Below are positions 1,284-29,351 of a stretch of 64,000 nucleotides of DNA, in pieces (the stretch's first letter is position 1; each line of letters opens with the position of its first letter). A model generated the notes under the pieces. It was not told the origin of the DNA. It searched no databases and was given only the letters and a program-made list of their open reading frames with translations. The stretch lies in the IMG/VR virus record IMGVR_UViG_3300024336_000005, positions 140,009 through 204,008 of that record. The stretch is one strand, 5' to 3'. Position numbers and translations under genes: made by a program.

Positions 1284-1855
1284 TGGAGCAGGAACAGTTT
1301 GATACACTAGTTAGAGGGATCTCAGCGGTCCTTGATAATGTAAGGACCCCACAGTTTCGCCCTCCCTCAGTAAACTTCTTCATGCCTAATCGAGGCCAGC
1401 TGCAGTTTACAATCGCCGCTCCACGTTATCGTGAAGTTGAGCGAAAGAATCCTAAGGATGCTGGAGTTCGCTGGGCAGATAAGATGGGAGCGGTCTTCGT
1501 TGAGGCAGCTCCTGCCTTGCCGAACTCAGACAAGCTGGACTGGGACAATAAGAAGATGATCTTTGCCATGTCAGACAAGGACATCGGCCAGGTCCTTTGG
1601 GGCTTTGCTGCCAAGAAGGAAGACATCCGACTTGTTCACGCTCCTGATGAAAATGCAAAGCAAAACAATAAGACCTTCCGAATCCGAAAGGGAGATGACT
1701 TTAGAGGCGAGCCTCAGTGGATTCTATCTCTTACGGAAAAGAAGAATGGAGAGTCAAATGAAGTCTCTGTGTTCATCAAGGGACCGGATATGATGAGACT
1801 CAAGTCGCTGTTGGAGGGAGCAATTCCCTACATACTGGGCGCCCATCGAACTTAG
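1283..1855 (+). CDS. Whirly-family ssDNA-binding protein
   Basis: GAVFVEAAPA...DWDNKKMIFAMSDKDIG...LVHAP...IPYILG parallels plant Whirly G.VLLQFAPA...YDW.RKQVFSLSVTEIG...FFHDP...PYLLGW. Confidence 0.7.
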   Translation: MEQEQFDTLVRGISAVLDNVRTPQFRPPSVNFFMPNRGQLQFTIAAPRYREVERKNPKDAGVRWADKMGAVFVEAAPALPNSDKLDWDNKKMIFAMSDKDIGQVLWGFAAKKEDIRLVHAPDENAKQNNKTFRIRKGDDFRGEPQWILSLTEKKNGESNEVSVFIKGPDMMRLKSLLEGAIPYILGAHRT

Positions 1856-1864
1856 GAGAATCAG

Positions 1865-2380
1865 TTGCTATTGTGGCTGTACCTTTTGTCACTTCCCTTG
1901 ATGGCTTGCCAGCCATACTCAGACAGCTATTACTCACATCTTCCTGATGCAGAGCACAGAAGTGCGACCTGCCAAAAAGGTGTGAGTATAGGCATGCTGT
2001 ATGGTCTGGATCCTGAGATGGTTGCTGCTCTTCTAATGGAAGAGCAAAGGCATGCCGATAAAGATTATGAGGGCGGCATTCGCGGTCCTTTCCAAGTGTC
2101 AGCAAAAGATTGGTGTGAGGGCGGAACGTTTTCCACCTGTGCTGATCTAAACATTGCTGGTGCAAGAGCAATATCTCTTTTAAGAAATTGCTCAAAAATA
2201 AACTGGTCTAATTATGAATGCAAAAGGGAGAGGCGTAAGCCTCTTCCTTGGAGCAAGGTCCTCTGTCACTATGCCTCTGGCAACAAGTGCACAAAGAAGG
2301 GACTTGCTTACACCAAGCGTGTTATGAGATGGAGAAATAATGTCCGACGCTACAGTAGACTACGACTTGCTAGAAGGTAA
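1865..2380 (+). CDS. SLT/lytic transglycosylase-like protein with N-terminal hydrophobic signal
   Basis: YGLDPEMVAALLMEE (catalytic Glu region), GPFQV, NIAGARAI and HYASG motifs. Confidence 0.6.
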   Translation: MLLWLYLLSLPLMACQPYSDSYYSHLPDAEHRSATCQKGVSIGMLYGLDPEMVAALLMEEQRHADKDYEGGIRGPFQVSAKDWCEGGTFSTCADLNIAGARAISLLRNCSKINWSNYECKRERRKPLPWSKVLCHYASGNKCTKKGLAYTKRVMRWRNNVRRYSRLRLARR

Positions 2381-2846
2381 AGCCATTCGGCTCCTATTGG
2401 AGTCCAATGGAAAGCAGCTCAGCGTAAAGGAAGTCTTTGATGCAATGCTCGCAGAACAGGACGCACATGCTTTAGCCCAAAGGCTTCCTCAAGAGGAGAG
2501 CGCTGCAGCGCAACTTGTTGCTGCCTGCTATGCCTTGGTTCCCGGCCTGCATGTAGAGTCTATGTACTATGGGCTAATCTTAGCAGCCTATCTGAATAGA
2601 AATAATATTGAGCTAAGCGTTGAGTCTACTGATATGACACTTGAAGACTGTGCCATAAAGAGGAAGAGCCTGGCGATGGAGATTAACACCATCATGAAGA
2701 GGGCCTTTGATCGAACTCAAGAGCACTTCAAGGGTGCAGAAGCAATGCTATTTGAACTAGAAAGGGGACTGCGTGAAGATACTGATCTATGTGAAGAAGA
2801 ATCAACAGGAGCCTCTCTCGATAGTCTCGAAGGCTCTGAGGGATAG
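2340..2846 (+). CDS. Hypothetical protein
   Basis: 168-aa ORF with SD GGAG. Confidence 0.65.
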   Translation: MSDATVDYDLLEGKAIRLLLESNGKQLSVKEVFDAMLAEQDAHALAQRLPQEESAAAQLVAACYALVPGLHVESMYYGLILAAYLNRNNIELSVESTDMTLEDCAIKRKSLAMEINTIMKRAFDRTQEHFKGAEAMLFELERGLREDTDLCEEESTGASLDSLEGSEG

Positions 2847-3297
2847 CATCAAGGGAGGGTTTGAATGGGAGGTTGTCTCCTGTTGGGATGACTTCGCCGA
2901 TGCTCTTGGGGTGTTTAAGGTTTATGCAGAGGATGGTGCGCCAAGACCTGGTGTTCACATTGACCTTAAGTGGCCAAGTCCTACGACATTCATAAAGAAG
3001 CCCGCGCTAAAAGAAAAGGTGTGGGCAGACATAGAGACTAAGCTTGTCCCCTTGTTTCATAAGAAGGCTCCTGATAGGGAGCCTCTTGTCCTTACGGACC
3101 ATCAGCTTCAAACAATCCTAAAGCTCCTTGGGGAGGCAAAGATTCCATTTGAAGTAGACCATCCCAATGGATCAGTCATAGGGATAAATAAGAACCATGG
3201 GGTGGAGTACAGTTTAACTTCTGCAGACGTTGCCTCTATGGTGGCTGCTGCTTGGCTATTCAAGTCTGGCTCGGTACGCCTCGAACGAAAAGAGTAG
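2773..3297 (+). CDS. Hypothetical protein
   Basis: 174-aa ORF in the co-oriented gene run. Confidence 0.6.
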   Translation: MKILIYVKKNQQEPLSIVSKALRDSIKGGFEWEVVSCWDDFADALGVFKVYAEDGAPRPGVHIDLKWPSPTTFIKKPALKEKVWADIETKLVPLFHKKAPDREPLVLTDHQLQTILKLLGEAKIPFEVDHPNGSVIGINKNHGVEYSLTSADVASMVAAAWLFKSGSVRLERKE

Positions 3298-3311
3298 TCA
3301 AGGAAAGGTAG

Positions 3312-3470
3312 GTGCTGTTTAGCAAGTATGCTAAATTAGTAGTAGGTTACTTTGTATATGGTGCGGCGAGAGAGACGTCATTTAGAATTCATGGCGTCCT
3401 CAAAGAAATGGCTGAGCCAAACTTAACCTTAAATTCTGATTTTGAATATGTTATCTATAGCATTGATTGA
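3312..3470 (+). CDS. Small hypothetical protein (52 aa, below ORF-track cutoff)
   Basis: GTG at 3312 after purine-rich AGGAAAGG; reads MLFSKYAKLVVG...YSID* and fills the apparent gap. Confidence 0.5.
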   Translation: MLFSKYAKLVVGYFVYGAARETSFRIHGVLKEMAEPNLTLNSDFEYVIYSID

Positions 3471-3479
3471 AGAAGGCAG

Positions 3480-4220
3480 ATGGATTGGAAAGAAAGACCA
3501 GCAAAGCAGAAGGCAAGAGATTGGCTGCTGTCGCAGCTGGACCTAAAGAGGGTAGACACATACCTAGGCCTCCCCGCAGGAGAGGCCATCTTCGAGAGGC
3601 TCTTAGTAAAAGAACATCCCGTATCTTCAATGGAACTCTTTGAACGAGATTTGGACGTAGCTGAATATCTTAGGGAAAGCATCTTTGCTTATAACCTAAG
3701 AGGGACGACTCTTCCCGAATGGAAGCACGCTCGTAGCGTAATAGTGAATGAAACAGACGTAGACGTCTGGCTGGGTCTGGCGAGAGAATTCGCTCCGTCC
3801 TTCCCCTCTTACGATCTTGCTTGGTTGGACTACTGTGGTCCGATTACCTCTACGAGATTAGAGAACCTTCAAAACCTTGCCGAAGCCATGCCAGATGATG
3901 GAGTCCTTGCGGTCACATTTATGGCTTGCAGAGAAGGGGCTGAGGTGTTTGGCGAAATGGTAGAGGCCGACTCTTCTGTTGCTATCATTAGGAAGAACAG
4001 AAGGTCGGATGCAGAGACTCCAGAGAAGCATCTCAAAAGAATTAGAATTGTTACAAACGCTCTCCTTGAGAAGACCTTTCCCTTGAGGATAAAGGTACTT
4101 CCCTATCAAGATGGAGCTCCAATGTTGTTGTTTGTAATCAAGAAGTCAGACAGCAAAAGAGGGATTGTTTCTCTCGCACGAAGGACTTCTGTAGAGGTCC
4201 TTCCATCACTAAAGGATTAA
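3480..4220 (+). CDS. Class I SAM-dependent methyltransferase-like protein
   Basis: YLGLPAGEA (motif I-like), MELFERD (acidic end of strand 2), YDLAWLDYCG (motif IV-like), DGVLAVTF. Confidence 0.55.
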   Translation: MDWKERPAKQKARDWLLSQLDLKRVDTYLGLPAGEAIFERLLVKEHPVSSMELFERDLDVAEYLRESIFAYNLRGTTLPEWKHARSVIVNETDVDVWLGLAREFAPSFPSYDLAWLDYCGPITSTRLENLQNLAEAMPDDGVLAVTFMACREGAEVFGEMVEADSSVAIIRKNRRSDAETPEKHLKRIRIVTNALLEKTFPLRIKVLPYQDGAPMLLFVIKKSDSKRGIVSLARRTSVEVLPSLKD

Positions 4221-4222
4221 TC

Positions 4223-4498
4223 ATGAACGCAGAAACAGTAACAGTTGACGACCTTATCATTTACACAGCAAGCCTTGAGGCAGAGGTTACAGAACTGGAA
4301 GAGGATAGAGAGCTCTTGACTGTAGAGAACCGTGGCCTTCGTCGAAGTGTAGGGGCCTATAAGGCCAATGGAACACGTCGTCGCGCAGCTCAAACGGAAA
4401 CGCAGGAGCGGCTCCAGGAACTTGAGAGTGAGAACCTACGCTTGAGGCGTTCGGTGGCCGGCTATAAGGCAAATGCAACACGCCGCGCCAATCGATAA
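4223..4498 (+). CDS. Coiled-coil protein with internal duplication
   Basis: ENRGLRRSVGAYKANGTRRRA and ENLRLRRSVAGYKANATRRA. Confidence 0.65.
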   Translation: MNAETVTVDDLIIYTASLEAEVTELEEDRELLTVENRGLRRSVGAYKANGTRRRAAQTETQERLQELESENLRLRRSVAGYKANATRRANR

Positions 4499-5247
4499 TG
4501 GCCCTCTGGTTTGATGAGGAGGGCTGGCTTCATTCGGATGAAGCCGATCTCCTTGTGGAGCACAACAAGACTCATAAGTTCTCAAAGGGAATGCATTCCT
4601 ATATCAAAAAGAACTTTGGCAATCAGTTGCATGGAACCATTACGCACTATGACGCCTTGCCTTCCGCAAGGCGAACGATTCAGGGGATGACTTCACAGAG
4701 GAAGACCCCCTCAACTCACTTTATCATTGCGCGAGATGGAAGAATTCATCAGCTGGTTTCCATCCACGATAGAGCCTGGCATGCTGCCTTTAAGAGGCTC
4801 GGCGGTAAGGTTGTAGAATGGCCTAAGACCAATGGGCGTATGCCCATGGGCAATGGTCACACTACTGGAAGCCCCAACCAATGGTTCATCGGCATTGACC
4901 TTTCCAATTGGGGAAAGCTCGATGGACTAACACCTAGGATAGCAAGGTCTTGGACTGGTGAGCCTATCAATGAATCTGATGTCAGTATGGTTCGCGGTGT
5001 GTGCTGGGAGAGATACAGAAAGGAAGCAACCGACTCTTATGTTGAATTGCTGGCTGCTCTTATCTTAGAGTTGGACCTCAAGAAGAATATGCATTACAGA
5101 CATAGTGATACCTCTCCGACAAGGAAGGTAGATCCAGGTCCAGCCTTTGACTTCACAACATATCTCAATAATGCTTATCATTGTGTTGATACTCTAGATC
5201 GAATCTTTGATTTAGATAACTTAGATGAGGAAAACGAGGAGCCTTAA
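4498..5247 (+). CDS. N-acetylmuramoyl-L-alanine amidase (Amidase_2/AmpD-like)
   Basis: ITHY, STHFIIARDGRIHQLV..DRAWHA, IGIDL and HSD..P.RKVDPG motifs. Confidence 0.85.
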   Translation: MALWFDEEGWLHSDEADLLVEHNKTHKFSKGMHSYIKKNFGNQLHGTITHYDALPSARRTIQGMTSQRKTPSTHFIIARDGRIHQLVSIHDRAWHAAFKRLGGKVVEWPKTNGRMPMGNGHTTGSPNQWFIGIDLSNWGKLDGLTPRIARSWTGEPINESDVSMVRGVCWERYRKEATDSYVELLAALILELDLKKNMHYRHSDTSPTRKVDPGPAFDFTTYLNNAYHCVDTLDRIFDLDNLDEENEEP

Positions 5248-5861
5248 TGAGCGAACAAGTGCAACAGACCATTGATACGGCACATAAGCCTACGCTGAAC
5301 CCATCATCTGGGGCACTTAGAGACGCTTGGCTAAGGAGCTTCAGCGAGAATGCCGTCGTAGGCAGGCTCTATGGAGAGGGTGGCGCTGTCATTTCAAAGG
5401 GCATGTCACCCATGGCTTGGTTGACCAAGCTGAGGGTGTTAGACCCCGGCAAGAAGTTTCACACGCTCTCCCCAGAGGAGCTTCAAGCTGTTTGGATTGA
5501 ACTTGCCTACAACTACAACACCGCTGCCTCCTTCCATGCTAACTACACCCTTGTTGCCAAGGCTTTAGCAGGAGAGGTCGAGGGAGTTGAGAGCGAATTT
5601 ATCGGTAAGGAAATAAGTGAATATAAACCGGGCGGTAAGCATTGGGACGCAGTCCTAAAGAAGGCCCCTCGTGCACCCGGCAAGGAAGTCCTTGAGAGGT
5701 TAGCTCGAGTTCACACATCCACAGCTCGGAAAGAGCTTCGTTGGTATAACATCCAAGCTGAATTCTTTTACAATATCATGATGAACCTAGAGACACAGAG
5801 ACGGTGCCTTAAGGACTATAATGAAATGGCAAGGGCCGACCCCTCTAACAGAGGGTTCTAA
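5247..5861 (+). CDS. Hypothetical helical protein
   Basis: 204-aa ORF, TAATG-coupled, SD GAGGAG. Confidence 0.65.
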   Translation: MSEQVQQTIDTAHKPTLNPSSGALRDAWLRSFSENAVVGRLYGEGGAVISKGMSPMAWLTKLRVLDPGKKFHTLSPEELQAVWIELAYNYNTAASFHANYTLVAKALAGEVEGVESEFIGKEISEYKPGGKHWDAVLKKAPRAPGKEVLERLARVHTSTARKELRWYNIQAEFFYNIMMNLETQRRCLKDYNEMARADPSNRGF

Positions 5862-5869
5862 GGAATTAA

Positions 5870-6574
5870 ATGACAGACCAAAATTATACTGACGTTATCG
5901 TATTGCTTGATAAGAGTGGATCAATGAGATCCATTGCTGGTGCCACAGTCAAGGGCGTAGATGATCTTATCACTGAGCAGGCTGCCGTTGGTGGCAAGTG
6001 CCTTTTCACTTTGATTCAGTTCAATGTGAATATGGAAACCACTTATGATGCTATCCCCATCTGTGAAGCTGGGGAGTTTTCTAAGAGGGACTATCGTCCT
6101 GGTGGTGCGACGGCATTGATGGATGCCCTTGGGTATACCATCAACAATACAGGTGTCCGCTTTCAGATAATGAAAGAAGAAGAGCGCCCTAACAAGGTTT
6201 TGTTTGTCATTGTGTCAGACGGTCTTGAGAACCAGTCTCAAATGTTTAGAGCTGAGACAGTTGCACAAATGATTGCCCATCAAGAGAACTACTACAAGTG
6301 GGAGTTCGTCTTCATCGGAACAGATTTTGATGTCGCAGCAGAACAAGATAGGCTGAAGTTTAAGAGCGCCTACATATTCAATAAAGATGGCGCTGGCACT
6401 GATGGTATGTTTAAGGGTCTTTCTCGCAGCATTGCGCGAGCCCGTACAACTGGCGAGGACTACAACACGGCATACGTAGTTTCTTCGGCACAAGCCGTGG
6501 CGGCAGGAACAGCTGATGTAGAGAGTCTTGCGAAGGCCACAGAAGCCACAAAGGCCTCCGCCAATAAGCCCTAG
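5870..6574 (+). CDS. von Willebrand factor A (VWA) domain protein
   Basis: MIDAS DKSGSM, GATALMDA, IVSDGLEN, WEFVFIG. Confidence 0.85.
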   Translation: MTDQNYTDVIVLLDKSGSMRSIAGATVKGVDDLITEQAAVGGKCLFTLIQFNVNMETTYDAIPICEAGEFSKRDYRPGGATALMDALGYTINNTGVRFQIMKEEERPNKVLFVIVSDGLENQSQMFRAETVAQMIAHQENYYKWEFVFIGTDFDVAAEQDRLKFKSAYIFNKDGAGTDGMFKGLSRSIARARTTGEDYNTAYVVSSAQAVAAGTADVESLAKATEATKASANKP

Positions 6575-6595
6575 CATTCGCTAGGAGGAGCATGC

Positions 6596-8935
6596 ATGTC
6601 CAAGGTAAAGGGAAGCGGCCTGATGGCCGCTTACAACTTCAAAGAAAAGTACGCACGTTATAATGGAGAGGAAAGCAGGAGGGAAGAGTGGCCTGAGTCG
6701 GTCCGTCGCATGTTTTACATGCACGACAACGCTTACGCTCACCTCTTGTCACCTGAAGACCTTGCGGAGGTCAGTGATGCAGAAGATTCTGTAAGGGCGA
6801 AGCTCCTCCTTGGCTCTCAGCGTGCCTTACAATTTGGAGGCAAGGGTGTAGAAGCTCACAACATGAGAATCTACAACTGTGCTGTCTCTTACTGTGACAG
6901 ACCAAGGTTCTTTGCAGAAGCCTTTTACATGTTGCTCTGTGGATGCGGCGTAGGGTTCTCGGTGCAGCAGCATCACGTTGCTCAGCTGCCTAAGTTCCGT
7001 ACTCATCCCACACAGATTAGCAAGGTCGTTACGATAAAAGACAGCATCGAAGGATGGGCAGATGCGCTTGACTATCTTGTTAGCTACTATCTTCAGCTAG
7101 CTCCTATTGATCATGCACAAGAGATTTTTGCAAAGCCTGAATTTGACTACTCTGAGATCCGAGATCGAGGAGCTAAGCTTTCAGTAGGTGGTACCGCCCC
7201 AGGACCTGAGCCTCTCAGAAGAGCCTTAGAAAAGATTAAGGCAATCTTTGAGAGGGCCATTGCAAATGGACAGGCAGAACTTCGCTCCGTTGATGCCTAT
7301 GATATTGTTATGCATGCTTCTGATGCTGTACTTTCTGGCGGCGTGCGTCGTTCTGCTTCTATCGCGCTTTTCTCTCCTGATGATGAGCTCATGGCAGGAG
7401 CAAAGACTGGCAATTGGTTCATTGATAATCCTCAGCGTGGCAGGAGTAATAACTCTGCTGTTCTTGTAAGAGGAGTGGACAACCTAGAGAACTTCAAACG
7501 ACTCATGAGGTCTGTCCGAGAGTTTGGAGAGCCTGGGTTCATCTTTGTTGAATCTCTTGAATATATCTACAACCCTTGCGTAGAAGTTGGCATGTGTCCG
7601 GTTCTAATCTTGGATCCAAATGGAGATGTTGTAGAACAATATACATTAGACCTACTTAATTTCACGAAACGAAATGAATGGACCGCAGAGGGATATACAT
7701 TTCGGAGTGGATGGCAGTGCTGCAATCTTACGGAAATGAATGCTTCTGCCTGGACCTCTCAGCATGATGCATATAAATGTGCACGTCATGCAGCGATTAT
7801 TGGGACCCTTCAGGCTGGCTACACTGATCCTGGATATCTAACAGCAACTTCACAACTCATCATTGAAAGAGAGTCCCTCCTGGGTGTTTCCATGACAGGG
7901 ATGATGGATAATACGACGTTGTCGTTAGATCCAATTGTGCTTAGGAGGATGGCTGAGATTGTTCGTGAAACAAACGCAGAGTGGGCCGCAAAGATTGGTA
8001 TCAATCCTGCTGCTAGAACCACATGCGTAAAACCTGCTGGTAACAGTTCGGTCCTTCTGTCTGAAAGGTTCTTCGTAGCCTCTGGCTGTCACGCGCACCA
8101 CGCTAAGAGAATGATTCGTAGAGTCCAGGCACACAAGGATGGTCCCATCCTACAGTGGTTTAAGGAACATAATCCTCATATGATTGAGGAGAGTGTTTGG
8201 AGTGCAAACAAGACTGATGATGTGATTAGCTTCCCCATTGAGATTCAAGAGGGGGCTCTCACAAAGGATCACTTTACGGCAATTCAATTCTTAAGCACTG
8301 TCGCACTGATTCAAAAGAACTGGGTCATCCCTGGCACAGCTAGACCAATGTCCTGCGAAGGCTTAACGCATAATGTATCCAATACATGCACCGTTCAGCC
8401 TGATGAGTGGGGTGACGTCGGACGCTATATCTATGAGAACAAGAAGCTCTTCTCTGGGCTTTCTCTCTTGAGTAGCTCGGGAGATTTCATCTACAGGCAA
8501 GCCCCTATGCAGAGGATTGTCTTTGAGGATGAGCTTGCGGAACAGTTTGGTAGATCTAACGTTGGTGCAGCTAAGCATTTGAAGCGTCATATAGAAAGGC
8601 GCTACGGTAGCCTTCACGACGTCATGATGCCACTTAAGATGGTACTTGAGGGGTACACCACAGAAGAGGCTATAGAGGGCACCAAGGTGCATCCAGAGCT
8701 ACTGTGGGATACCTATAAGAGGATCCGTGCTGTCATCCATGTTGAAGACACAGATGACATCCTATTTCTACTGTCCGCTATAGGACATGAGGAACTATGG
8801 AAGAGCCTTACTGAAAATATGGTTGATGTAGATTACTCTCAGCTCTATGAGGGAGAGGATCTTACAAAGCTTGCAGACAATATTGCCTGTGGTGGTGGCT
8901 CTTGCGAGCTGGACTTTAGCATTCCAAAGGAATAA
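6596..8935 (+). CDS. nrdJ: Class II (adenosylcobalamin-dependent) ribonucleotide reductase
   Basis: YNCA, GGVRRSA, NPCVE (radical Cys), CNLTE, TTCVKPAG and C-terminal CGGGSC. No beta-subunit gene adjacent. Confidence 0.85.
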   Translation: MSKVKGSGLMAAYNFKEKYARYNGEESRREEWPESVRRMFYMHDNAYAHLLSPEDLAEVSDAEDSVRAKLLLGSQRALQFGGKGVEAHNMRIYNCAVSYCDRPRFFAEAFYMLLCGCGVGFSVQQHHVAQLPKFRTHPTQISKVVTIKDSIEGWADALDYLVSYYLQLAPIDHAQEIFAKPEFDYSEIRDRGAKLSVGGTAPGPEPLRRALEKIKAIFERAIANGQAELRSVDAYDIVMHASDAVLSGGVRRSASIALFSPDDELMAGAKTGNWFIDNPQRGRSNNSAVLVRGVDNLENFKRLMRSVREFGEPGFIFVESLEYIYNPCVEVGMCPVLILDPNGDVVEQYTLDLLNFTKRNEWTAEGYTFRSGWQCCNLTEMNASAWTSQHDAYKCARHAAIIGTLQAGYTDPGYLTATSQLIIERESLLGVSMTGMMDNTTLSLDPIVLRRMAEIVRETNAEWAAKIGINPAARTTCVKPAGNSSVLLSERFFVASGCHAHHAKRMIRRVQAHKDGPILQWFKEHNPHMIEESVWSANKTDDVISFPIEIQEGALTKDHFTAIQFLSTVALIQKNWVIPGTARPMSCEGLTHNVSNTCTVQPDEWGDVGRYIYENKKLFSGLSLLSSSGDFIYRQAPMQRIVFEDELAEQFGRSNVGAAKHLKRHIERRYGSLHDVMMPLKMVLEGYTTEEAIEGTKVHPELLWDTYKRIRAVIHVEDTDDILFLLSAIGHEELWKSLTENMVDVDYSQLYEGEDLTKLADNIACGGGSCELDFSIPKE

Positions 8936-9156
8936 TGATGAAGATTACGTACGAGAAGAGCAATGCAACTCCTATTGCTGATTGCAAGCCAGGCTCACTA
9001 TACCGCCTTGAGGGCGGTAGCACTCCATTGTTTTGTATCTTTACCTCAAATGGGGAGAGGTTCTTTTATATGAGCACTGGTGGGAGTAAGGAATTGTCGC
9101 CATCAGATACTCTTTATGAATTGGATGCTGAGCTTGTGATAAAGGGGGACCTATGA
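8935..9156 (+). CDS. Hypothetical protein
   Basis: Coupled ORF. Confidence 0.55.
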   Translation: MMKITYEKSNATPIADCKPGSLYRLEGGSTPLFCIFTSNGERFFYMSTGGSKELSPSDTLYELDAELVIKGDL

Positions 9157-9497
9157 GTAGGAAGCTTATTTCTTTTGATGAGGTCAGAAACAAGGGTTAC
9201 CTTCAAGAGGTGAACCGTCAGTTCTTTCATCCGCTAGGCATTGCCCTTGCTCTTATCTACGATGTAGATGAGGAAACAGGAGAGCGTACTGCCACTGATC
9301 AGGTTGAGTTCCTAGACTGTAGGAATGACCCTGAGGGCTACTGCTTTGATGAAGAGTATATGAGGGAGAATGCTGAGCGCTTTTGGGCCAGGTCTGAAAA
9401 CGTCCTTGAGGAGCTTGCGGCTAAAGCGCACGCAAGAAGTCACTTGTTTGGGTATATCGTCCAGTCGCTACCGAAGAAGCTGTCTGACGATGGGTAA
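9153..9497 (+). CDS. Hypothetical protein
   Basis: ATGA-coupled ORF; GYLQEVNRQFFHPLGIAL looks like a conserved phage motif. Confidence 0.65.
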   Translation: MSRKLISFDEVRNKGYLQEVNRQFFHPLGIALALIYDVDEETGERTATDQVEFLDCRNDPEGYCFDEEYMRENAERFWARSENVLEELAAKAHARSHLFGYIVQSLPKKLSDDG

Positions 9498-9813
9498 GCT
9501 AGTAAGGGATAAGATTCCTGAGATTATCGAGGCGTCTGGAAGGACGCCTCTGTTTTATGAAACTTCAGGACATAACTATTGGGAGTTCCTGATAGATAAG
9601 CTTCTTGAAGAGGCTCGTGAAGCCTCAGAGCACACTCCTTACAAGAAGGGCCGGGCTGGGATTGAATCTGAACTAGCTGACGTTCTGGAAGTCTTGTATG
9701 CCCTCTGTGATAATCTAGACGTTCCCTTTGCGTCCATCCAAGAGGCCAGGCTTCAAAAGAAGATGGAACGTGGTGGCTTTTCTAAGGGATATATACTAAC
9801 AGGAGTGGAATGA
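9490..9813 (+). CDS. MazG-like / PRA-PH family NTP pyrophosphohydrolase
   Basis: KLVRDKIPEII, KLLEEAxE, ELADVLEV, ERGGF. Confidence 0.85.
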   Translation: MGKLVRDKIPEIIEASGRTPLFYETSGHNYWEFLIDKLLEEAREASEHTPYKKGRAGIESELADVLEVLYALCDNLDVPFASIQEARLQKKMERGGFSKGYILTGVE

Positions 9814-10382
9814 TGGGTGACGGTAAGTCGTGGGCGGCCGATGAGGAGAAGCGAGCTGCGGACGAGGCGCGGATGGCGAAGCGCCTCGTGGAGACTCGCC
9901 ATGCGCTTCTAGCTCTAGCGGAGAGGGAAGCAGAACAGTATGTCCCTATCTTTAAGGCAGAAGACGCAACAACTGCTTCTGTTAGGAATACAGCATGCAA
10001 GACGGTCCTTCAGCTAGGCTCTTCTCTTGAGGGAGATGAATGTCCTAATTGCGAGAATGGCGTTCTAGACAAGGACCTTGCTGGCAATTTATGTTGCACG
10101 GGAGAGTGTGGCTGTATTTTCCCTGCGGGAACGACTAAGCTAGAAGATCCTGCCGAGAAAGATCTCATTGATGATGAGATGATTAATCATCCCAGCCACT
10201 ACAACAATGGTTCCATTGAGTGTATCGACTACATTGAAGACCAAGAGCTTAACTATCATGCAGGCTGTGCGGTCAAATATATTGCACGCTATCGCTTCAA
10301 GGGCACTCCCGTCAAAGACTTGCGCAAAGCCTCATGGTATCTCCTTAGGCTGGCTAATAGGCTAGAAGCAAAGGAAAAGTAA
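9810..10382 (+). CDS. DUF3310 (T7 gp1.7-like) domain protein with Cys-rich N-terminal part
   Basis: INHPSHYN.GSIECIDYI...KYIARY..KG...DLRKA.WYL; CPNC...CCTGECGC upstream. Confidence 0.75.
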   Translation: MMGDGKSWAADEEKRAADEARMAKRLVETRHALLALAEREAEQYVPIFKAEDATTASVRNTACKTVLQLGSSLEGDECPNCENGVLDKDLAGNLCCTGECGCIFPAGTTKLEDPAEKDLIDDEMINHPSHYNNGSIECIDYIEDQELNYHAGCAVKYIARYRFKGTPVKDLRKASWYLLRLANRLEAKEK

Positions 10383-23083: not shown

Positions 23084-24076
23084 ATGAAAGACTTTGTACA
23101 TCTTCACCTGCACACTAAGTTCAGCCTACAAGATGGTACCACTGAGCCTGAAGGGCTCATGAAAAAGTGTGCCGATCATGGGATGAAGTCCGTTGGAGTG
23201 ACAGATCATGGGAATATGGCAGGGATGTGGGATTGTGCTAAGTACGCTAAGCAGTATGGCATTAATCTAATCCCTGGCAATGAATTCTATGTTGTTCCTG
23301 ATGCACAAAAGAGCAGGGGGAATGATTGGCGGAAGGGGAAGTCCTCTCATCTTGGACTTCTTGCTTATAGTCAGACCGGTTGGGATAATCTGTTGAGGCT
23401 TACTGCGTTATCGAATCTTGAGGGATTCTATAACGAACCTCGGATAGACTATAGGATGCTCAGAGAGAACTCCGAAGGATTGTGGTGTATGTCTGGCTGC
23501 CTCGGCGGCTTCATAAATACAGCCATTAAGAATAATCAATCCCCAAGGTTTGCGGTAGATATGCTGCATAGTATCTTTGGAGATAGGCTATCTCTTGAGA
23601 TACAGGTGAACCCAATACCTGACCAGCAGATTCTTAATGATGAAGTGATAGCAATTCATCATGCTACAAAGATTCCCCTCGTTGCTACCGTTGATGCTCA
23701 CTACTTAGATAAGACTGATAGCCACAACCAGGACATCCTGTTTGCAATGCAGTTAGGGAAATCCCTAGAGGACCCAGAGAGGCTGAAGATGCCTCCAGAA
23801 GAGCACTCTGTTGAAACCCCAGAGGAAGCCATCAAGAGGTTCACAGATAAGTATGGGAACCTTGGATTGGAGGCTTGTCGGAGGACGGTAGAGATTGGAG
23901 ACAACTCTCACTCAGAGATTACTTACCAAAGTAAGAGCTATAAAATTCCCACCCTTGATGTTGCAGCACAGCCAGACTTCCAAGAGTTTCTTAAATGGAA
24001 GACAGGCTGTGAATGTCACACCTCAGACAAAGGGGAGTGCTTAGTACATGGAAAAGCCTGTGGGCATAACCACTAG
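23084..24076 (+). CDS. dnaE: Stand-alone PHP domain of DNA polymerase III alpha
   Basis: FVHLHLHTKFSLQDG, TDHGNM, GNEFY, HLGLLA, GFY..PRID, SGCLGG, LVATVDAHY. Ends at the PHP-palm linker with a Cys/His tail. Confidence 0.9.
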   Translation: MKDFVHLHLHTKFSLQDGTTEPEGLMKKCADHGMKSVGVTDHGNMAGMWDCAKYAKQYGINLIPGNEFYVVPDAQKSRGNDWRKGKSSHLGLLAYSQTGWDNLLRLTALSNLEGFYNEPRIDYRMLRENSEGLWCMSGCLGGFINTAIKNNQSPRFAVDMLHSIFGDRLSLEIQVNPIPDQQILNDEVIAIHHATKIPLVATVDAHYLDKTDSHNQDILFAMQLGKSLEDPERLKMPPEEHSVETPEEAIKRFTDKYGNLGLEACRRTVEIGDNSHSEITYQSKSYKIPTLDVAAQPDFQEFLKWKTGCECHTSDKGECLVHGKACGHNH

Positions 24077-24393: not shown

Positions 24394-24719
24394 CAGATTC
24401 ACTTGGGAATGAATACAGAGTGGGAGATATACTCTTGTACGTCGCCGGGGGAGATCAGGCTCGGCCACAGATTGCCATGTTTGTTGAAGCTTATATGAAT
24501 GCAGATGGAGATCCTAAAAATAGGTTCCTTTTTGCGAACCGTAGAACGTGGAATCGAGATCAAAATAACGTGTCTGTCAGAACTATTGGACGGCCCTGGA
24601 GGGCCCGCTTGAAGCGGCTCTCTGATGTCCTTCCTCATGACAAGGCCCTCGAGGCAAGAGATTTCTTTGAGTATGCCCTGGAGCTAAAGGGATACGAGCT
24701 TGGGCTGCCTCTTCTTTGA
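24390..24719 (+). CDS. Hypothetical protein
   Basis: GTGA overlap with groES; TDSLGNEYRVGDIL motif. Confidence 0.6.
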   Translation: MTDSLGNEYRVGDILLYVAGGDQARPQIAMFVEAYMNADGDPKNRFLFANRRTWNRDQNNVSVRTIGRPWRARLKRLSDVLPHDKALEARDFFEYALELKGYELGLPLL

Positions 24720-24766
24720 GGTATGATGTCAGAATGGAGAGGTCTCAGAGAGAAGGAGAGGTTCAA

Positions 24767-25592
24767 ATGAAGAGTGATGATCAGAACTCCTACCTTTTAT
24801 TTTGGGCCCAGAAGGGGCTTAAGGCAAGAGGGCTCTGGGATGACCAGGTCTATAAGGATAGGGTAGATTACGAGTGGAAAGTTATCTCTCGTATGGGGTT
24901 TGCAGGATACTATCTTGTAGTCGCTGACTACGTGGCTTGGGCCCGTAGTCAAAGAATCCCAGTGGGGCCTGGACGTGGTTCAGGTGCTGGCTCTTTGATT
25001 GCCTATGCTGTAGGCATAACGGATGTGGATCCCATTAAGTGGGGCCTAATGTTTGAGAGGTTCTTGAACCCAGGTAGAGTCTCCATGCCTGACTTTGACA
25101 TTGACTTTGGAAAGAGAGATCGACTCAAGGTTTTTGACTACCTGTCAGAGAAATACGGACATCAGAACGTTTGTCAGATTGGTACTATTGGCACCATGAA
25201 GGCAAAGCTTGCGGTCAAAGATGTGGGGAGAACCCTTGGACTTGATCCCTCTGAGCTGGAAAGATTCTCTAGCTTAATTCCCGACGAAGAAAGAGGAGGA
25301 CAGGGCGATCATGCTATCACCTTGAGCCTCCTCTTGGATCCTCCCAGGGAGCTTGTTAAGGCTCACGGAGAGGCTCTTGCAAAGTTCAGAACTGCTTATG
25401 AATTCGACAAAGACTTTCATAGAGTTGTCAACCTTGCTGTAGAGCTGGAAGGAATCCCAAAGAGTTACGGGGTGCACGCAGCTGGAGTTGTCATCGGAAT
25501 TGATTCTCTATGGGGAGATATTCCTCTTAGGAAATCAAATGATGGAAGGCCTGTTAGTCAGTGGACTGACAAGCAGGTCGAAAAGATGGGGT
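24767..25592 (+). CDS. dnaE: DNA polymerase III alpha catalytic core, exon 1
   Basis: SD AGGAGAGG; GFAGYYLVV.D, GPGRGSGAGSL, FERFLNP.RVSMPDFDIDF, HAAGVVI. Confidence 0.93.
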
Positions 25593-25734
25593 TAGCTTAT
25601 TAGCCCCTGTATGGAGCAATCCGTACAGCAAACAAGGTGAACCCCAAAGCAAAGGGGGTGTGCTGCATCTGCAGCGCTAACAGGGGAACCTAAGTGAGCG
25701 AGTCTCATAAGGCAATCCTGTGCTAAGCTTTTGA

Positions 25735-25763
25735 TTGATTAGGTATTGCAAAATTGATATAAT
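25735..25763 (+). promoter_or_regulatory. Sigma70-type promoter for the intron HNH gene
   Basis: TTGATT-17 bp-TATAAT with extended -10 TG. Confidence 0.6.
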
Positions 25764-25790
25764 AGGAGCTCAACAAACAGGAGCTGCGTT

Positions 25791-26327
25791 ATGCAAAAGT
25801 TAGAAGGATTTGAGAAGGTAGAATCTGAAGGAATTTTGGGAGAGTATTATATTCATCCAGACGGAAGGATCTACAGAGATTACGGACATAGAATAAAATT
25901 TCTTTCCGAGAGGCCAAATGCTTATGGCTATAGTCGAATAAGCTTGCTTCATCAGGATGGACGTAGAGTGGATCGAATGATGCATCGATTATTGATGTTA
26001 ACATTTGTCCCAAATCCAGATAATAAGCCACAAGTCAATCATAAAGACGGAGATAAAAGCAACAATCAGCTTTCCAATTTGGAATGGGTTACAGATCGAG
26101 AAAATAAGCTTCATTCACATAGAGTGCTTGGAGCCAAATCTAGTGACAAAAGTTGTTTCTTATTTTATTTTGGGGGCTTTGTTCAAAGGTTTCCAAACAT
26201 CCAAGCTGCTTGTAACTATGCAGCTAAAAAATATGGGTGCTCCTCAAAGTCTTTATGTAAATATTACACATCTAATGGATGTGCAATTATTACAGAAGAA
26301 AGTGCAACGACTATCCTAACGGAGTAG
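25791..26327 (+). CDS. Intron-encoded HNH homing endonuclease (I-HmuI-like)
   Basis: HRLLM.TFVPNPDNKPQVNHKDGDKSNNQLSNLEWVT..EN..H; located in the P6 region of the intron. Confidence 0.9.
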   Translation: MQKLEGFEKVESEGILGEYYIHPDGRIYRDYGHRIKFLSERPNAYGYSRISLLHQDGRRVDRMMHRLLMLTFVPNPDNKPQVNHKDGDKSNNQLSNLEWVTDRENKLHSHRVLGAKSSDKSCFLFYFGGFVQRFPNIQAACNYAAKKYGCSSKSLCKYYTSNGCAIITEESATTILTE

Positions 26328-26420
26328 GGGGGGTATTGCTCCTCTCGAAGCGCCTTGATCTCTGAATCAATACAGAGAATATGATATAGTCTGTGCCACT
26401 AGAAATAGTGGAATAACACG

Positions 26421-28141
26421 TTGTAAAGTTCGACTTTCTGGGACTCCGCACACTTGATGTAATTGAAGACGCCTGTCGTAGCATAGAGAAAAGAACTGGA
26501 GTGACTATTGATTGGGAACAGACTCCCGAGGATGATGGTCCTACATTCGATATGCTCAGCAGAGGAGACACCTTTGGTGTCTTCCAGCTGGAGGCATCTG
26601 GTATCTCTGGGTTTACCAAGGGATATAAGCCAAGGTCTATCGATGACATCTCAATCATCTCAGCTCTATACAGACCTGGTCCGCTGGATAATGGGATGGT
26701 AGATGCCATTCTGTCTGTCCGCAAGGGGAAGAAGATTGAAGAGAGTCCTGTTGATGTCATTAAAGAAATCCTTAAGGATACGAATGGGGTTCTGACATAT
26801 CAGGAACAAGTATTAGCAATATCAAGGGAGATGGCTGGGTTTACCCTGTCGGGTGCTGATCTATTGAGGCGCGCGATTGGCAAGAAGCTGCCCGAAGAGA
26901 TGCAAGCGCAGGAGCAAAACTTTGTTGATGGCTCCGTAGAGAAGGGGTATCCAAAGCATCAAGCTTTGGAAGTATTTGAAATCATTAAGAAATTCGCTGA
27001 CTATTGTTTGTCATATGATACTAAGGTATTGACCGATAAGGGGCCTCTCTCAATTGGTCATATTGTAGAAAATCAGCTAGAGGTTTCTGTTTATTCTATT
27101 GATGAGCATGGGCTTGTCTACTCTCAGCCGGTGGCTCAGTGGCATGACAGGGGCATAAGAGAAGTCTTTGAATACAAGCTTGAGGATGGCTCTGTCATCC
27201 GAGCGACCGAAGATCATAAGTTTATGACCGTCGATGGAGATATGCTTGCTATTGAAACAATCTTCCTGCAGAATAGGGATATGCTTGTCATTGAAACAGG
27301 CAAGATTCAAATAGGGGAGATTGAAATGAAGCCTTATAATAAACTAAATGACCTGGACAAACAACTTGTCCAACGACTGTACTATGAAGGATTATCCTTT
27401 GAGGACATCTCAAAGGAAGCTGTGGTATCTCAACGTTCTGTTAGTCGTGTTTTGCAAGAGGCTAATATTAACACCAGAAGGAAAAACCGTTATACCCTTA
27501 ATGAAAGCTTCTTCTGTGGAGCATATGATCATTATGAATGTGCATATTTTTTAGGCCTACTGGCAGCAGATGGATGCGTTACTCATAAGGATTACATCGC
27601 CCTCCAGCTTATTGATGAAGAACTTGTCTTATGGTTTCGCAAAGCGATCGAATACTCAGGAGAAGTTCGGCTTATCCTTGGCGAGGAGCGAAAGCCCCCT
27701 GGCCAAGATGCCTATAGGGTGAACTTTAGCTCTGCCATAATGTCAGAGGAACTTCGTTCATATGGAATCATTGCCGGAAGACATCTTCAAGCAATTCCGA
27801 AGTTAGAAGATTCAATTGTGCCTCATTTTATTCGAGGGTATTTTGATGGAGATGGATGTGTTTACTTAAGGCCAGAGGGTTCTGGTGGAGTTGTTCATAT
27901 TGTAGCCTCCGAGGCGTTTTGCGAATCGCTTAAAGAATACTTTGGATTCGGAACAATTAGTTCACATCCCAGTGGTATGTATTATTGGAGGATCTTTGCA
28001 AAAAAACATGTGAATGTTTTTTATGAAGCCCTATATGATTCTGATGGTTCAGAGACCCTGTGCCTTAATCGCAAAAAGCAACTAATGGAAGCCTTCCTAC
28101 GGAGCTACAAGTATGAAAATTGTTGGAAAGCAAAGGATTGA
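26421..28141 (+). CDS. dnaE: DnaE exon 2 + N-intein + in-frame LAGLIDADG endonuclease
   Basis: KFDFLG, GVFQLE, ALYRPGP, YQEQV, ADLLRRAIGKK, FADY then CLSYDT (intein start 27005). The frame ends at stop 28141. Confidence 0.92.
27005..27300 (+). mobile_element. Split intein N-half, Npu/Ssp DnaE-type
   Basis: CLSYDTKVLT...QPVAQWHDRG..EVFEY.LEDGS.IRATEDHKFMTVDG.ML.I..IF (blocks A and B). Confidence 0.92.
27326..28141 (+). CDS. LAGLIDADG homing endonuclease with N-terminal HTH (own SD/ATG, in frame with IntN)
   Basis: SD AGGGGAG at 27313-19; YFLGLLAADGCV and FIRGYFDGDGCV; LNRKK. Confidence 0.85.
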   Translation: MKPYNKLNDLDKQLVQRLYYEGLSFEDISKEAVVSQRSVSRVLQEANINTRRKNRYTLNESFFCGAYDHYECAYFLGLLAADGCVTHKDYIALQLIDEELVLWFRKAIEYSGEVRLILGEERKPPGQDAYRVNFSSAIMSEELRSYGIIAGRHLQAIPKLEDSIVPHFIRGYFDGDGCVYLRPEGSGGVVHIVASEAFCESLKEYFGFGTISSHPSGMYYWRIFAKKHVNVFYEALYDSDGSETLCLNRKKQLMEAFLRSYKYENCWKAKD

Positions 28142-29351
28142 GGATCAATCAGTCTATGATATTGGAGTAGAAAAAGACCATAACTTTCTTCTTGCTGATG
28201 GACAGGTTGCTTCCAATTGCTTTAACAAAAGCCATAGTGTGGCCTATTCAATGCTTTCATATAGAACAGCTTATCTTAAGTGTCACTATCCTTCTGACTT
28301 CTATGCTGCAGAGCTTACGAGCCACGAAGGGGAAGTCAAGAAGCTTCTCCCAGCAATGGCAGATGCTCGAGCACACCACATGAAGATCAAGACTCCTGAT
28401 ATTAATCTTAGTGAGGAGTGCTTTACGGCGACCGCCAGACATGAAATAAGGTTTGGACTTGCTGGAATTAAGGGGCTTGGGACAAAGGCTCTTCAGTCTA
28501 TTATGAATGAAAGAGCCAATGGGAGTTTTGAGTCTATCACTGGCTTATGCAAGAGGCTCTCCTCTTCTGAGATTAAGTCGAATAATCTCACAGCCTTAGC
28601 AAGGTCTGGTGCATTTTCCCAAATAGAAACTGGAATGAACACAGCAGAGCTTGCAGAGTATGCCGTTAACACAGCGATTGCTCTTCGTAGCTATCATAAA
28701 GATGAGAAGAAAGGCCAGGTGTCTATCTTTTCTGTTATGACTGAAGCTCCAGAAAATGAGATTAATGTTCAGAGACCGTCAATTCATTTGGATGATGGAG
28801 ATGAACTGGAGCTAGAGAAGGAAGCCTTGGGCTTTTATATCTCAGGATCTCCTCTGGATAAGTACAATACTATTAAGGAAAGATCCCATATAGATGAAAT
28901 TGAAAGCTTAGAAGTTGATGGCATTTGGGTATCAGTTCTTGCCAGGATAACAGAGCTTAAGATTAGAAATGGAAAGAGGGGAAGCTTTGCAATACTACAG
29001 CTAGAAGATACTAGCGGCAGCATTGGAGCTAAGATTTGGTCTAACAATATGGCTGAAGCTCGTCCATACTTAGAAGAAGGTAAGAGTGTTGTTGTCAGAG
29101 GAAAGACAAACTCCTACAAAGGACTTGAAATTGTTGTGGATTCTATTGTAGACGCTGAATCAGAAGTGAAAAGACTTTTGAAGAGAGTGGTCATTCATAG
29201 ACTTGATTCCACGATTTTAAATACACTCTTGCAATTGCCTGCAGGAAATGTTCCTATAGATCTTGAGCTTTCAAATGGCCAGATCAAACAACGACTTGGA
29301 TTTTTTGAAATCCAACCCCACATGCTGAGGGAACTGAATGAGATGGACTGA
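28113..29351 (+). CDS. dnaE: Split intein C-half (35 aa, 28113-28217) + DnaE C-terminal extein (HhH, OB)
   Basis: SD GGAG at 28101; MKIVGKQ...VYDIGVEKDHNFLLADGQVASN|CFNKSHSVAY; PDINLS, IRFGLAGIKGLG, EKEALGFYISGSPL, LEDTSG. Confidence 0.93.
   Translation: MKIVGKQRIEDQSVYDIGVEKDHNFLLADGQVASNCFNKSHSVAYSMLSYRTAYLKCHYPSDFYAAELTSHEGEVKKLLPAMADARAHHMKIKTPDINLSEECFTATARHEIRFGLAGIKGLGTKALQSIMNERANGSFESITGLCKRLSSSEIKSNNLTALARSGAFSQIETGMNTAELAEYAVNTAIALRSYHKDEKKGQVSIFSVMTEAPENEINVQRPSIHLDDGDELELEKEALGFYISGSPLDKYNTIKERSHIDEIESLEVDGIWVSVLARITELKIRNGKRGSFAILQLEDTSGSIGAKIWSNNMAEARPYLEEGKSVVVRGKTNSYKGLEIVVDSIVDAESEVKRLLKRVVIHRLDSTILNTLLQLPAGNVPIDLELSNGQIKQRLGFFEIQPHMLRELNEMD

Follow-up and report, generated by a model that had tools for sequence, protein, structure and literature searches.

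An endonuclease-bearing split DnaE intein of the cyanobacterial type in a phage dnaE gene

The split DnaE intein of cyanobacteria is a workhorse of protein trans-splicing. A stretch of 64,000 nucleotides from an IMG/VR virus record (IMGVR_UViG_3300024336_000005, positions 140,009 to 204,008; the whole stretch is called the window here) contains an intein of this type in a phage dnaE gene, and an open reading frame (ORF) for a LAGLIDADG homing endonuclease lies between its N-terminal half (IntN) and its C-terminal half (IntC), in frame with the first. The locus raises the question of whether an intein has been caught in the act of splitting or whether the window holds one copy of an older mobile element, and of what it can tell about the origin of the cyanobacterial split intein. 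We consider it likely, with a probability of about 0.8, that a composite mobile element is present here in its phage form, as a "fractured" dnaE gene with a LAGLIDADG endonuclease, and we infer its splicing and homing from its sequence.

Split DnaE inteins are known from Ssp PCC6803 and Npu (Wu 1998, Iwai 2006 and Caspi 2003, as cited in PMC2677866). In model strains such as Synechocystis the two halves are unlinked and free of an endonuclease (PMC2677866, PMC7765530), and a 2020 review still describes them as encoded at separate places. The fractured genes of Dassa 2009 (gp41-1, NrdJ-1, IMPDH-1 and DnaE-1/2/3) carry GIY-YIG or Vsr-like endonucleases, their three DnaE loci are at other sites, and their hallmark is an overlap of 6-69 bp between the 3' end of the endonuclease gene and the start of IntC (PMC2677866). 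Subscription papers apart, full-text literature searches turned up no mention of a cyanobacterial-type DnaE intein with a LAGLIDADG endonuclease between its halves, be it in a phage or in a cyanobacterium. Fractured genes as such are known; what appears to be new here is the LAGLIDADG endonuclease at the cyanobacterial DnaE site and its in-frame fusion to IntN.

A split intein of the cyanobacterial DnaE type

A preliminary description of the window placed IntN and a 35-aa IntC at the Y|CFNKSH site, and this holds base for base. The first junction reads ...KFADY|CLSY... at 27005 and the second ...VASN|CFNKSH at 28218 (coordinates are collected in Table 1), the corresponding sequence of cyanobacterial homologues being ...FAEY|CLSY. 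The identity to Npu, put by eye at about 60%, proved accurate as well: IntN shares 60.6% of its residues with the Npu-type IntN of P0149 and 75.5% with the IntN of the closest relative that we found, locus L032, and it matches the Npu DnaE intein chain 4qfq_A with an E value of 4.5e-36. IntC matches the Npu and Ssp chains with E values from 2.5e-11 to 4e-7. The splicing residues are all present (Cys1, the TxxH of block B, the DHNF of block F, the C-terminal Asn and the +1 Cys) and align residue for residue with the Npu structures, and Cys1, TxxH, DHNF and ASN|C are kept in all of the phage lineages described below.

IntC had been described as starting in a frame other than that of the endonuclease, with its own Shine-Dalgarno (SD) sequence and ATG and an overlap of 29 nt, and each of these features was recovered (GGAG at 28101-28104, ATG at 28113, bases 28113-28141 read in both frames). 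Because the IntC ATG lies in the +1 frame within the last codons of the endonuclease, IntC would be made as a separate polypeptide, and an ORF layout in which IntC has an SD sequence and ATG of its own places the two intein halves on separate chains. Judged from these features, the window holds a true split intein on two ORFs, which is of the cyanobacterial DnaE type and occupies the site known from cyanobacteria, and the intact catalytic residues of this intein, together with the behaviour of Npu-type inteins, predict that it splices in trans.

The endonuclease between the intein halves

The ORF between the halves encodes a helix-turn-helix (HTH) and double-LAGLIDADG protein that, as noted at the outset, continues the frame of IntN and yet has its own SD sequence (GGGGAG, 27314-27319) and ATG (27326). 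Its product scores 32.8 bits against Pfam LAGLIDADG_3 (cut-off 22.5), and D82, D174 and D176 of the LAGLIDADG motifs are invariant among 40 homologues. The AlphaFold2 model has a predicted local distance difference test (pLDDT) score of 92.5 and fits the pseudo-dimeric alpha-beta-beta-alpha-beta-beta-alpha fold of LAGLIDADG endonucleases. In a Foldseek comparison with the Protein Data Bank, the top 50 matches are all LAGLIDADG-fold proteins, nearly all of them homing endonucleases or maturases; the best is I-Tsp061I (5e-8), and I-AniI, PI-PfuI and the TliVMA intein are matched too. With its catalytic residues intact, the endonuclease between the halves is probably active.

The homologues of this endonuclease are of the free-standing type; they measure 260-290 aa, and their alignment begins at the residue that ATG 27326 encodes. 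An exhaustive search of 1.84 billion representatives returned no natural protein that spans IntN and the endonuclease. Four candidates for such natural fusions (P0158, P0149, P0185 and P0193) were rejected as synthetic constructs. Also set aside were the cyanobacterial DnaE-N proteins with a LAGLIDADG Pfam match (P0005, P0006, P0008, P0009 and P0014), in which the endonuclease belongs to other, upstream inteins.

No terminator-like site was found between IntN and IntC, which makes co-transcription plausible; the counts in the promoter and terminator scan were no higher than in shuffled sequence. At both junctions of the endonuclease, a scan for RNA structure or a slippery site gave nothing significant or conserved. 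A weak hairpin at 27277-27308 (z -1.65) is without a counterpart in L032.

The same arrangement in divergent phage lineages

Over a length of 13.6 kb the window agrees base for base with two IMG/VR contigs. The exact 546-aa ORF that contains the fusion occurs on 10 contigs, with 3 further JGI sample ids returned for it, and several samples yielded the fusion allele, on contigs that are nearly complete and reach ~204 kb. L032, a Logan contig of 135 kb, is the nearest relative, with identities to the window of 50-64% in the exteins, ~75% in IntN, 63.5% in the endonuclease and 69% in IntC. Its IntN ends with a TAG stop, followed by a 9-nt spacer and a TTG start of the endonuclease, and its IntC overlap is the same 29 nt. 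Including L032, six divergent lineages of phage relatives have the same arrangement (L032, L034, L035, L036-38, L122 and L124). The gene order in these phages is DnaE-N/IntN, endonuclease, IntC/DnaE-C and then, where the contig reaches, a metallophosphoesterase, with a primase-helicase next in L032, L035 and L036. In each of these relatives a stop closes IntN and the endonuclease has a start of its own; the overlap of IntC with the endonuclease end is 29 or 47 nt.

Our survey comprised 54 loci that hold IntN, endonuclease and IntC, 47 of them with an intact endonuclease. Of these 47 loci, 46 have IntC shifted by +1 against the frame of the endonuclease; the overlaps measure 8, 17, 29 or 47 nt, and both reading frames are conserved through them. 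IntN is closed by a stop before the endonuclease in all 53 loci other than the window, with variable spacing and frames, and the window is the sole case in which IntN reads through into the endonuclease. This fusion looks derived, by a single stop loss that put GGG in place of TAG. A stop loss is the parsimonious history because the other 53 loci all stop IntN and because the window is nested with L032 in the trees, as (L034,(L032,window)) with support of 99-100. With the IntN stop lost, the N-terminal precursor would comprise DnaE (core and finger), IntN and the endonuclease.

The split itself, including the position of the IntC start, is common to seven phage lineages and to at least 45 loci labelled as cyanobacterial (described below). 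It is therefore old, and the window is not freshly split, so that the "just split" state proposed in the preliminary description has to be given up.

Proposed mechanism and alternative explanations

In the mechanism that we propose, the dnaE pieces would be co-transcribed and the group I intron at 25593-26420 would be spliced from the mRNA. Translation would then yield the N-terminal precursor ending in IntN-endonuclease, with the endonuclease possibly made alone as well, from the SD sequence and ATG at 27326, and the IntC precursor would probably be made by translational coupling. The N- and C-precursors would associate through IntN and IntC, after which Cys1, Asn35 and Cys+1 would perform the trans-splicing that joins DnaE. 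IntN-endonuclease and IntC would be released as the non-covalent equivalent of a classical bifunctional intein, and the endonuclease would cut the intein-less dnaE of co-infecting relatives, into which the IntN-endonuclease-IntC cassette would be copied. The sequence itself establishes the anatomy, the homology, the conserved arrangement and the intact catalytic residues; nuclease activity and homing are expected on the same grounds as splicing.

Some points weigh against this account. The 276-residue C-terminal extension that the fusion places on IntN could slow assembly of the halves, trans-splicing of the fused form being a prediction, and the internal ATG at 27326 is used possibly rather than surely. 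In addition, close relatives yielded no intein-less allele, the only intein-less FADY|CFNK alleles seen being the distant ones of L130 and L131, and the fractured genes of Dassa 2009 have a 27-51-nt spacer and a hairpin before the endonuclease, of which the window lacks the spacer and has, in place of a clear hairpin, the weak one at 27277-27308.

A different history would make the in-frame junction of IntN and endonuclease ancestral, the locus being a contiguous LAGLIDADG maxi-intein that was just split by a frameshift before IntC. The two parts do share one frame, with no indel relative to L032, LAGLIDADG is the usual type of intein endonuclease, and the split is at the canonical endonuclease insertion point. 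We nevertheless regard this history as improbable. The stops that follow IntN in the other 53 loci lie in differing frames and at differing spacings, and with the window nested beside L032 several independent stop gains would be needed as opposed to one stop loss. The endonuclease keeps an SD sequence and ATG of its own, the outgroup endonucleases are intron-encoded or free-standing and begin at the same residue, and no contiguous allele at the intein site was found by a word-indexed search, by the exhaustive search of representatives or among viral contigs. The junction therefore does not read as the relic of a maxi-intein that the preliminary description had implied: the endonuclease family is free-standing or intron-encoded, and L032 has its TAG exactly where the window has GGG. 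An ordinary contiguous maxi-intein could also be disguised by a one-base assembly or sequencing error within 28086-28141, since the frames are one base apart and the +1 frame is open from 28086. Independent assemblies are identical, however, with the 546-aa ORF on all of the 10 contigs mentioned above, and the overlap contains no single-base run longer than four A. Because 46 of the 47 loci retain the +1 break, despite extein identities to L032 of 50-64%, and because both frames are conserved over the overlap, an assembly error is in effect excluded.

The two frames could in principle be joined during translation, by programmed +1 frameshifting of the ribosome where the endonuclease stops (GAU UGA G), which would yield a contiguous intein, and a NNU-UGA-RGA context at this stop is common to the window, L032 and L034. 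This context is accounted for by the conserved IntC residues (I/L)ED, though, and the product would be without the first IntC strand. Because the endonuclease stop shifts from locus to locus (overlaps of 8, 17, 29 and 47 nt), while the IntC start and its SD sequence stay fixed, and because no stable or conserved RNA structure was found (z +0.64 and -0.60), we hold such a frameshift to be very unlikely. There is, finally, a small chance that the element is decaying, the stop loss having crippled IntN or the endonuclease so that splicing does not take place and DnaE functions as non-covalent pieces, or the host polymerase is used instead. The phage dnaE is already in pieces (a separate PHP gene and an intron), and degraded endonuclease copies occur in some cyanobacteria (L088, L092-094, L101 and L108), both of which would suit decay. 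Against it stand the splicing and nuclease residues, all of them intact, the presence of the fusion allele in several samples on near-complete contigs, and the fact that bifunctional inteins naturally have their endonuclease domains attached to the C-terminus of IntN.

Comparison with known systems

If the locus is a fractured dnaE gene, as we propose, it combines features of several known systems. Like the cyanobacterial split DnaE inteins, it has the Y|CFNKSH site, an IntN of ~102 aa, an IntC of 35-36 aa and the same split point; Cys1, TxxH, DHNF, a terminal Asn without a penultimate His, and Cys+1 are shared, and IntN identity is 55-75%. It differs from Ssp and Npu in that the host gene is a phage dnaE, of another extein lineage, and in that the halves adjoin rather than lying far apart, with an endonuclease between them that is fused to IntN.

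The fractured genes of Dassa 2009 are alike in having N-extein plus IntN, an endonuclease gene, and IntC plus C-extein on one strand, in phage replication genes, and in the overlap of the endonuclease 3' end with the IntC start. In contrast to them, the window has its LAGLIDADG endonuclease at the cyanobacterial DnaE site, homologues occur in cellular chromosomes, and there is no IntN stop or non-coding spacer, a feature of the Dassa genes that all 53 related loci do possess. The origin of the cyanobacterial split intein has so far been accounted for by a model alone, that of Dassa 2009, in which a free-standing endonuclease first invades, is then lost, and the halves become unlinked last (PMC2677866). 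By our analysis, the loss of the 5' flank of the endonuclease in the window is half of step IIIa of that model.

Classical bifunctional LAGLIDADG inteins (PI-PfuI, TliVMA) likewise have a HINT domain with a double-motif nuclease after the N-terminal splicing part. In the window, by contrast, IntC is a separate ORF set off by a +1 break with TGA at 28139-28141, and the endonuclease has its own start and the N-terminal HTH typical of its free-standing relatives. Free-standing endonucleases also make genes in pieces without inteins, as in Aeh1 nrdA (PMC3045599). The endonuclease gene there is mobE. That locus resembles the window in that an endonuclease gene splits an essential replication gene, with its end overlapping the downstream start, and differs from it in that the pieces in the window are predicted to be rejoined covalently by the intein.

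Relatives in cyanobacteria and Clostridia

An endonuclease-profile scan of one genome per species gave its best cellular matches in filamentous and other cyanobacteria, at 40-44% identity; the genomes matched include Microcoleus, Kamptonema, Leptolyngbya PCC 7375, Capilliphycus, Chamaesiphon, Chroococcidiopsis, Okeania and a metagenome-assembled genome of the Gloeobacterales. In these cyanobacteria, chromosomal dnaE-n/IntN, endonuclease (~259 aa) and IntC/dnaE-c adjoin, the overlap is typically 8 nt (ATGGTTAA), and IntC starts at the same place as in the phages, after endonuclease ...SYK. At least 45 cyanobacterial-labelled loci have this linked, endonuclease-bearing arrangement (L039-L078, L080, L088, L091-L094, L101, L105 and L108; for example L040 at 1327-6353 and L066 at 1401-6137). 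The statement, taken over from earlier work, that the cyanobacterial halves are unlinked and endonuclease-free thus stands for model strains (Synechocystis) but fails for many filamentous and other cyanobacteria. IntN of the linked type are scattered over the cyanobacterial IntN tree, with none in the 40-row clade that contains Npu.

The endonuclease is truncated in six or seven of the cyanobacterial loci (L088, L092, L093, L094, L101, L108 and L068), and in Microcoleus vaginatus HSN003 (L088) the one between the halves is interrupted by ~2.8 kb. In these truncated copies the endonuclease seems to be decaying, as a step towards a split gene that is free of it.

The same family of HTH-LAGLIDADG endonucleases also occurs in Clostridia (L081 at 3918-5100, L083 and L086), inside a group I intron of dnaE (RF00028, 78-83 bits; gathering score 50). 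The clostridial proteins have 34-36% full-length identity to the window endonuclease and sit in the same gene at nearly the same site; their vehicle, however, is an RNA intron and not an intein, and it interrupts dnaE at FAKY-A|F-NKSH, ~4 nt downstream of the intein site.

In three further loci (L033 at 223-1839, L119, and L120 at 2614-7033), a homologous endonuclease comes after a dnaE whose end reads ...(A/S/K)Y. Neither an IntN nor an Rfam intron match was found in these dnaE loci, of which L033 and L119 are short contigs. The endonuclease called in L120 and in L121 does not translate to the database protein.

Phylogeny and direction of transfer

In trees rooted on intron-encoded or intein-less endonucleases, the split-intein endonucleases form one clade (support 100/98), within which the cyanobacterial endonucleases form one clade of their own (99-100/99). 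The latter groups with L122 and L124 (98/97), inside a grade of phages. A direction from phage to cyanobacterium is favoured by these trees but not shown, because the approximately unbiased (AU) test does not reject phage monophyly (p 0.153 for the endonuclease alone, 0.12 for the concatenate) and because the phage branches are long. The intein phylogeny suggested as a check in the preliminary description was informative in part: in an IntN tree without outgroup (103 columns), six of the seven phage-type IntN fall in a clade of their own (support 96/94), but that clade lies in a polytomy, and no contiguous allele had been found at the site that could be included.

We offer a wider scenario tentatively, as possible though with the odds somewhat against it. 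The endonuclease may have moved from a clostridial-type group I intron to a mini-intein at the dnaE FAxY|xFNKSH site, and one fracturing, probably in a phage, may have founded all cyanobacterial split DnaE inteins, including those of Npu and Ssp. If this were true, the linked, endonuclease-bearing arrangement of cyanobacteria would be the older one and the unlinked, endonuclease-free state of the model strains would be derived, and the stop loss in the window would be a snapshot of a free-standing endonuclease becoming an intein domain (Dassa step IIIa).

A more distant split intein is present on the viral contig L132 (128-4622), at FADY|CFNKSH, with an IntN identity of 36%. Its halves are ~2.1 kb apart, separated by unrelated genes that include one for a 474-aa repeat-rich protein, and are without an endonuclease. 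L132 may represent an unlinking stage. In another viral fractured dnaE, L126 (12-4637), a different split intein lies at FNK|SH, with Ser at +1. Its HTH-LAGLIDADG endonuclease has 279 aa, and the end of the endonuclease and the start of IntC have 26 nt in common. L130 and L131 have intein-less phage dnaE alleles, which read GFADY-CFNKAH near 3501, and such alleles are possible natural targets for this kind of element.

The main value of the locus is evolutionary, and the relevance to the origin of the cyanobacterial split intein, with phage involvement, that was first suggested for it is upheld. The states newly supplied are adjoining halves with an intact endonuclease (in phages and cyanobacteria), degraded endonucleases, the separated halves of L132, the IntN-endonuclease fusion of the window, and a group I intron at the dnaE site that encodes an endonuclease of the same family. 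Together, these loci make three questions testable: which way the transfer between phage and host went, in what order the events took place, and how an endonuclease comes to be an intein domain. The locus is also a source of new Npu-like split inteins: the diverged inteins of at least seven phage lineages may be orthogonal or differ in extein tolerance, and the window intein keeps its proposed standing as a candidate tool for trans-splicing.

The phage genome and its dnaE pieces

The window belongs to a phage-like genome with genes for a class II ribonucleotide reductase, PhoH, a DHH phosphoesterase and a primase-helicase; virion structural genes stand in a block on the minus strand. The matching IMG/VR contigs measure 204 kb and 143 kb. 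When GenBank phages were searched with DNA and protein sequences, no close cultured relative was returned, the matches to window proteins having at most 32% identity for dnaE and at most 24% for the primase. The dnaE gene of the window is split over several ORFs (Table 1).

Table 1. Features of the dnaE locus, in window coordinates
Feature	Position	Strand	Remarks
PHP domain of DnaE, as a separate gene	23084..24076	+	Pfam PHP 3e-37; without intein
Pol III alpha core ORF	24716-25603	+	contains dnaE exon 1
dnaE exon 1 (Pol III alpha core)	24716..25592	+	Pfam DNA_pol3_alpha 3.2e-78
Group I intron interrupting dnaE between core and finger	25593..26420	+	RF00028 matches below gathering score
HNH endonuclease ORF inside group I intron	25791-26327	+	HNH_3 3e-10
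dnaE exon 2 (finger domain, N-extein, ending ...KFADY)	26421..27004	+	Pfam DNA_pol3_finger 2.8e-45
546-aa ORF	26501-28141	+	finger/N-extein, IntN and endonuclease in one frame
IntN	27005..27313	+	Cys1 (27005-27007) directly after ...KFADY; TEDH block B
GGG codon	27314-27316	+	position of the TAG stop of IntN in L032 (collinear comparison)
GGGGAG SD sequence of endonuclease	27314..27319	+	6 nt 5' of ATG 27326
HTH and double-LAGLIDADG homing endonuclease ORF, 271 aa from ATG 27326	27326..28141	+	in frame with IntN; stop TGA 28139-28141
LAGLIDADG motif 1 (YFLGLLAADGCV; YFLGLLAADG)	27545..27580	+	
LAGLIDADG motif 2 (GYFDGDGCV)	27836..27862	+	
GGAG SD sequence of IntC	28101..28104	+	8 nt 5' of IntC start; purine-rich GGA(G/A) in the same place in relatives
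IntC, 35 aa, ending ...VASN	28113..28217	+	+1 frame relative to endonuclease; Asn codon 28215-28217
412-aa ORF	28113-29351	+	IntC and C-extein
C-extein of DnaE (HhH and OB domains), first residues CFNKSH	28218..29351	+	Pfam HHH_6 1.9e-21, tRNA_anti-codon 1.2e-10

A Cpn10-like ORF and a 123-aa ORF lie 3' of the PHP gene, between it and the polymerase core. The PHP domain is encoded by a separate gene in L032 too (6346-10001), where seven genes stand between it and the polymerase core, including those for an RNA ligase and a 2OG-Fe(II) oxygenase.

The start codon of exon 1 is uncertain (TTG 24716 or a later ATG), and its end was set by comparison with the uninterrupted L032 homologue. Exon 2 is in frame and without a start codon; joining GGGT to TTGTAAAG gives MGFVKFDF, the same as in the uninterrupted L032. 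The RF00028 matches in the intervening 25593-26420 score 27.6 bits (E 6e-4) and 18.8 bits, against a gathering score of 50. A promoter-like site with a TG extension is found at 25735-25763, upstream of the HNH ORF. The relative phage L036 (3012-4361) has a second LAGLIDADG ORF inside the part of dnaE that encodes the Pol III alpha core, accompanied by a group I intron-like signal of 44.3 bits (E 2e-8).

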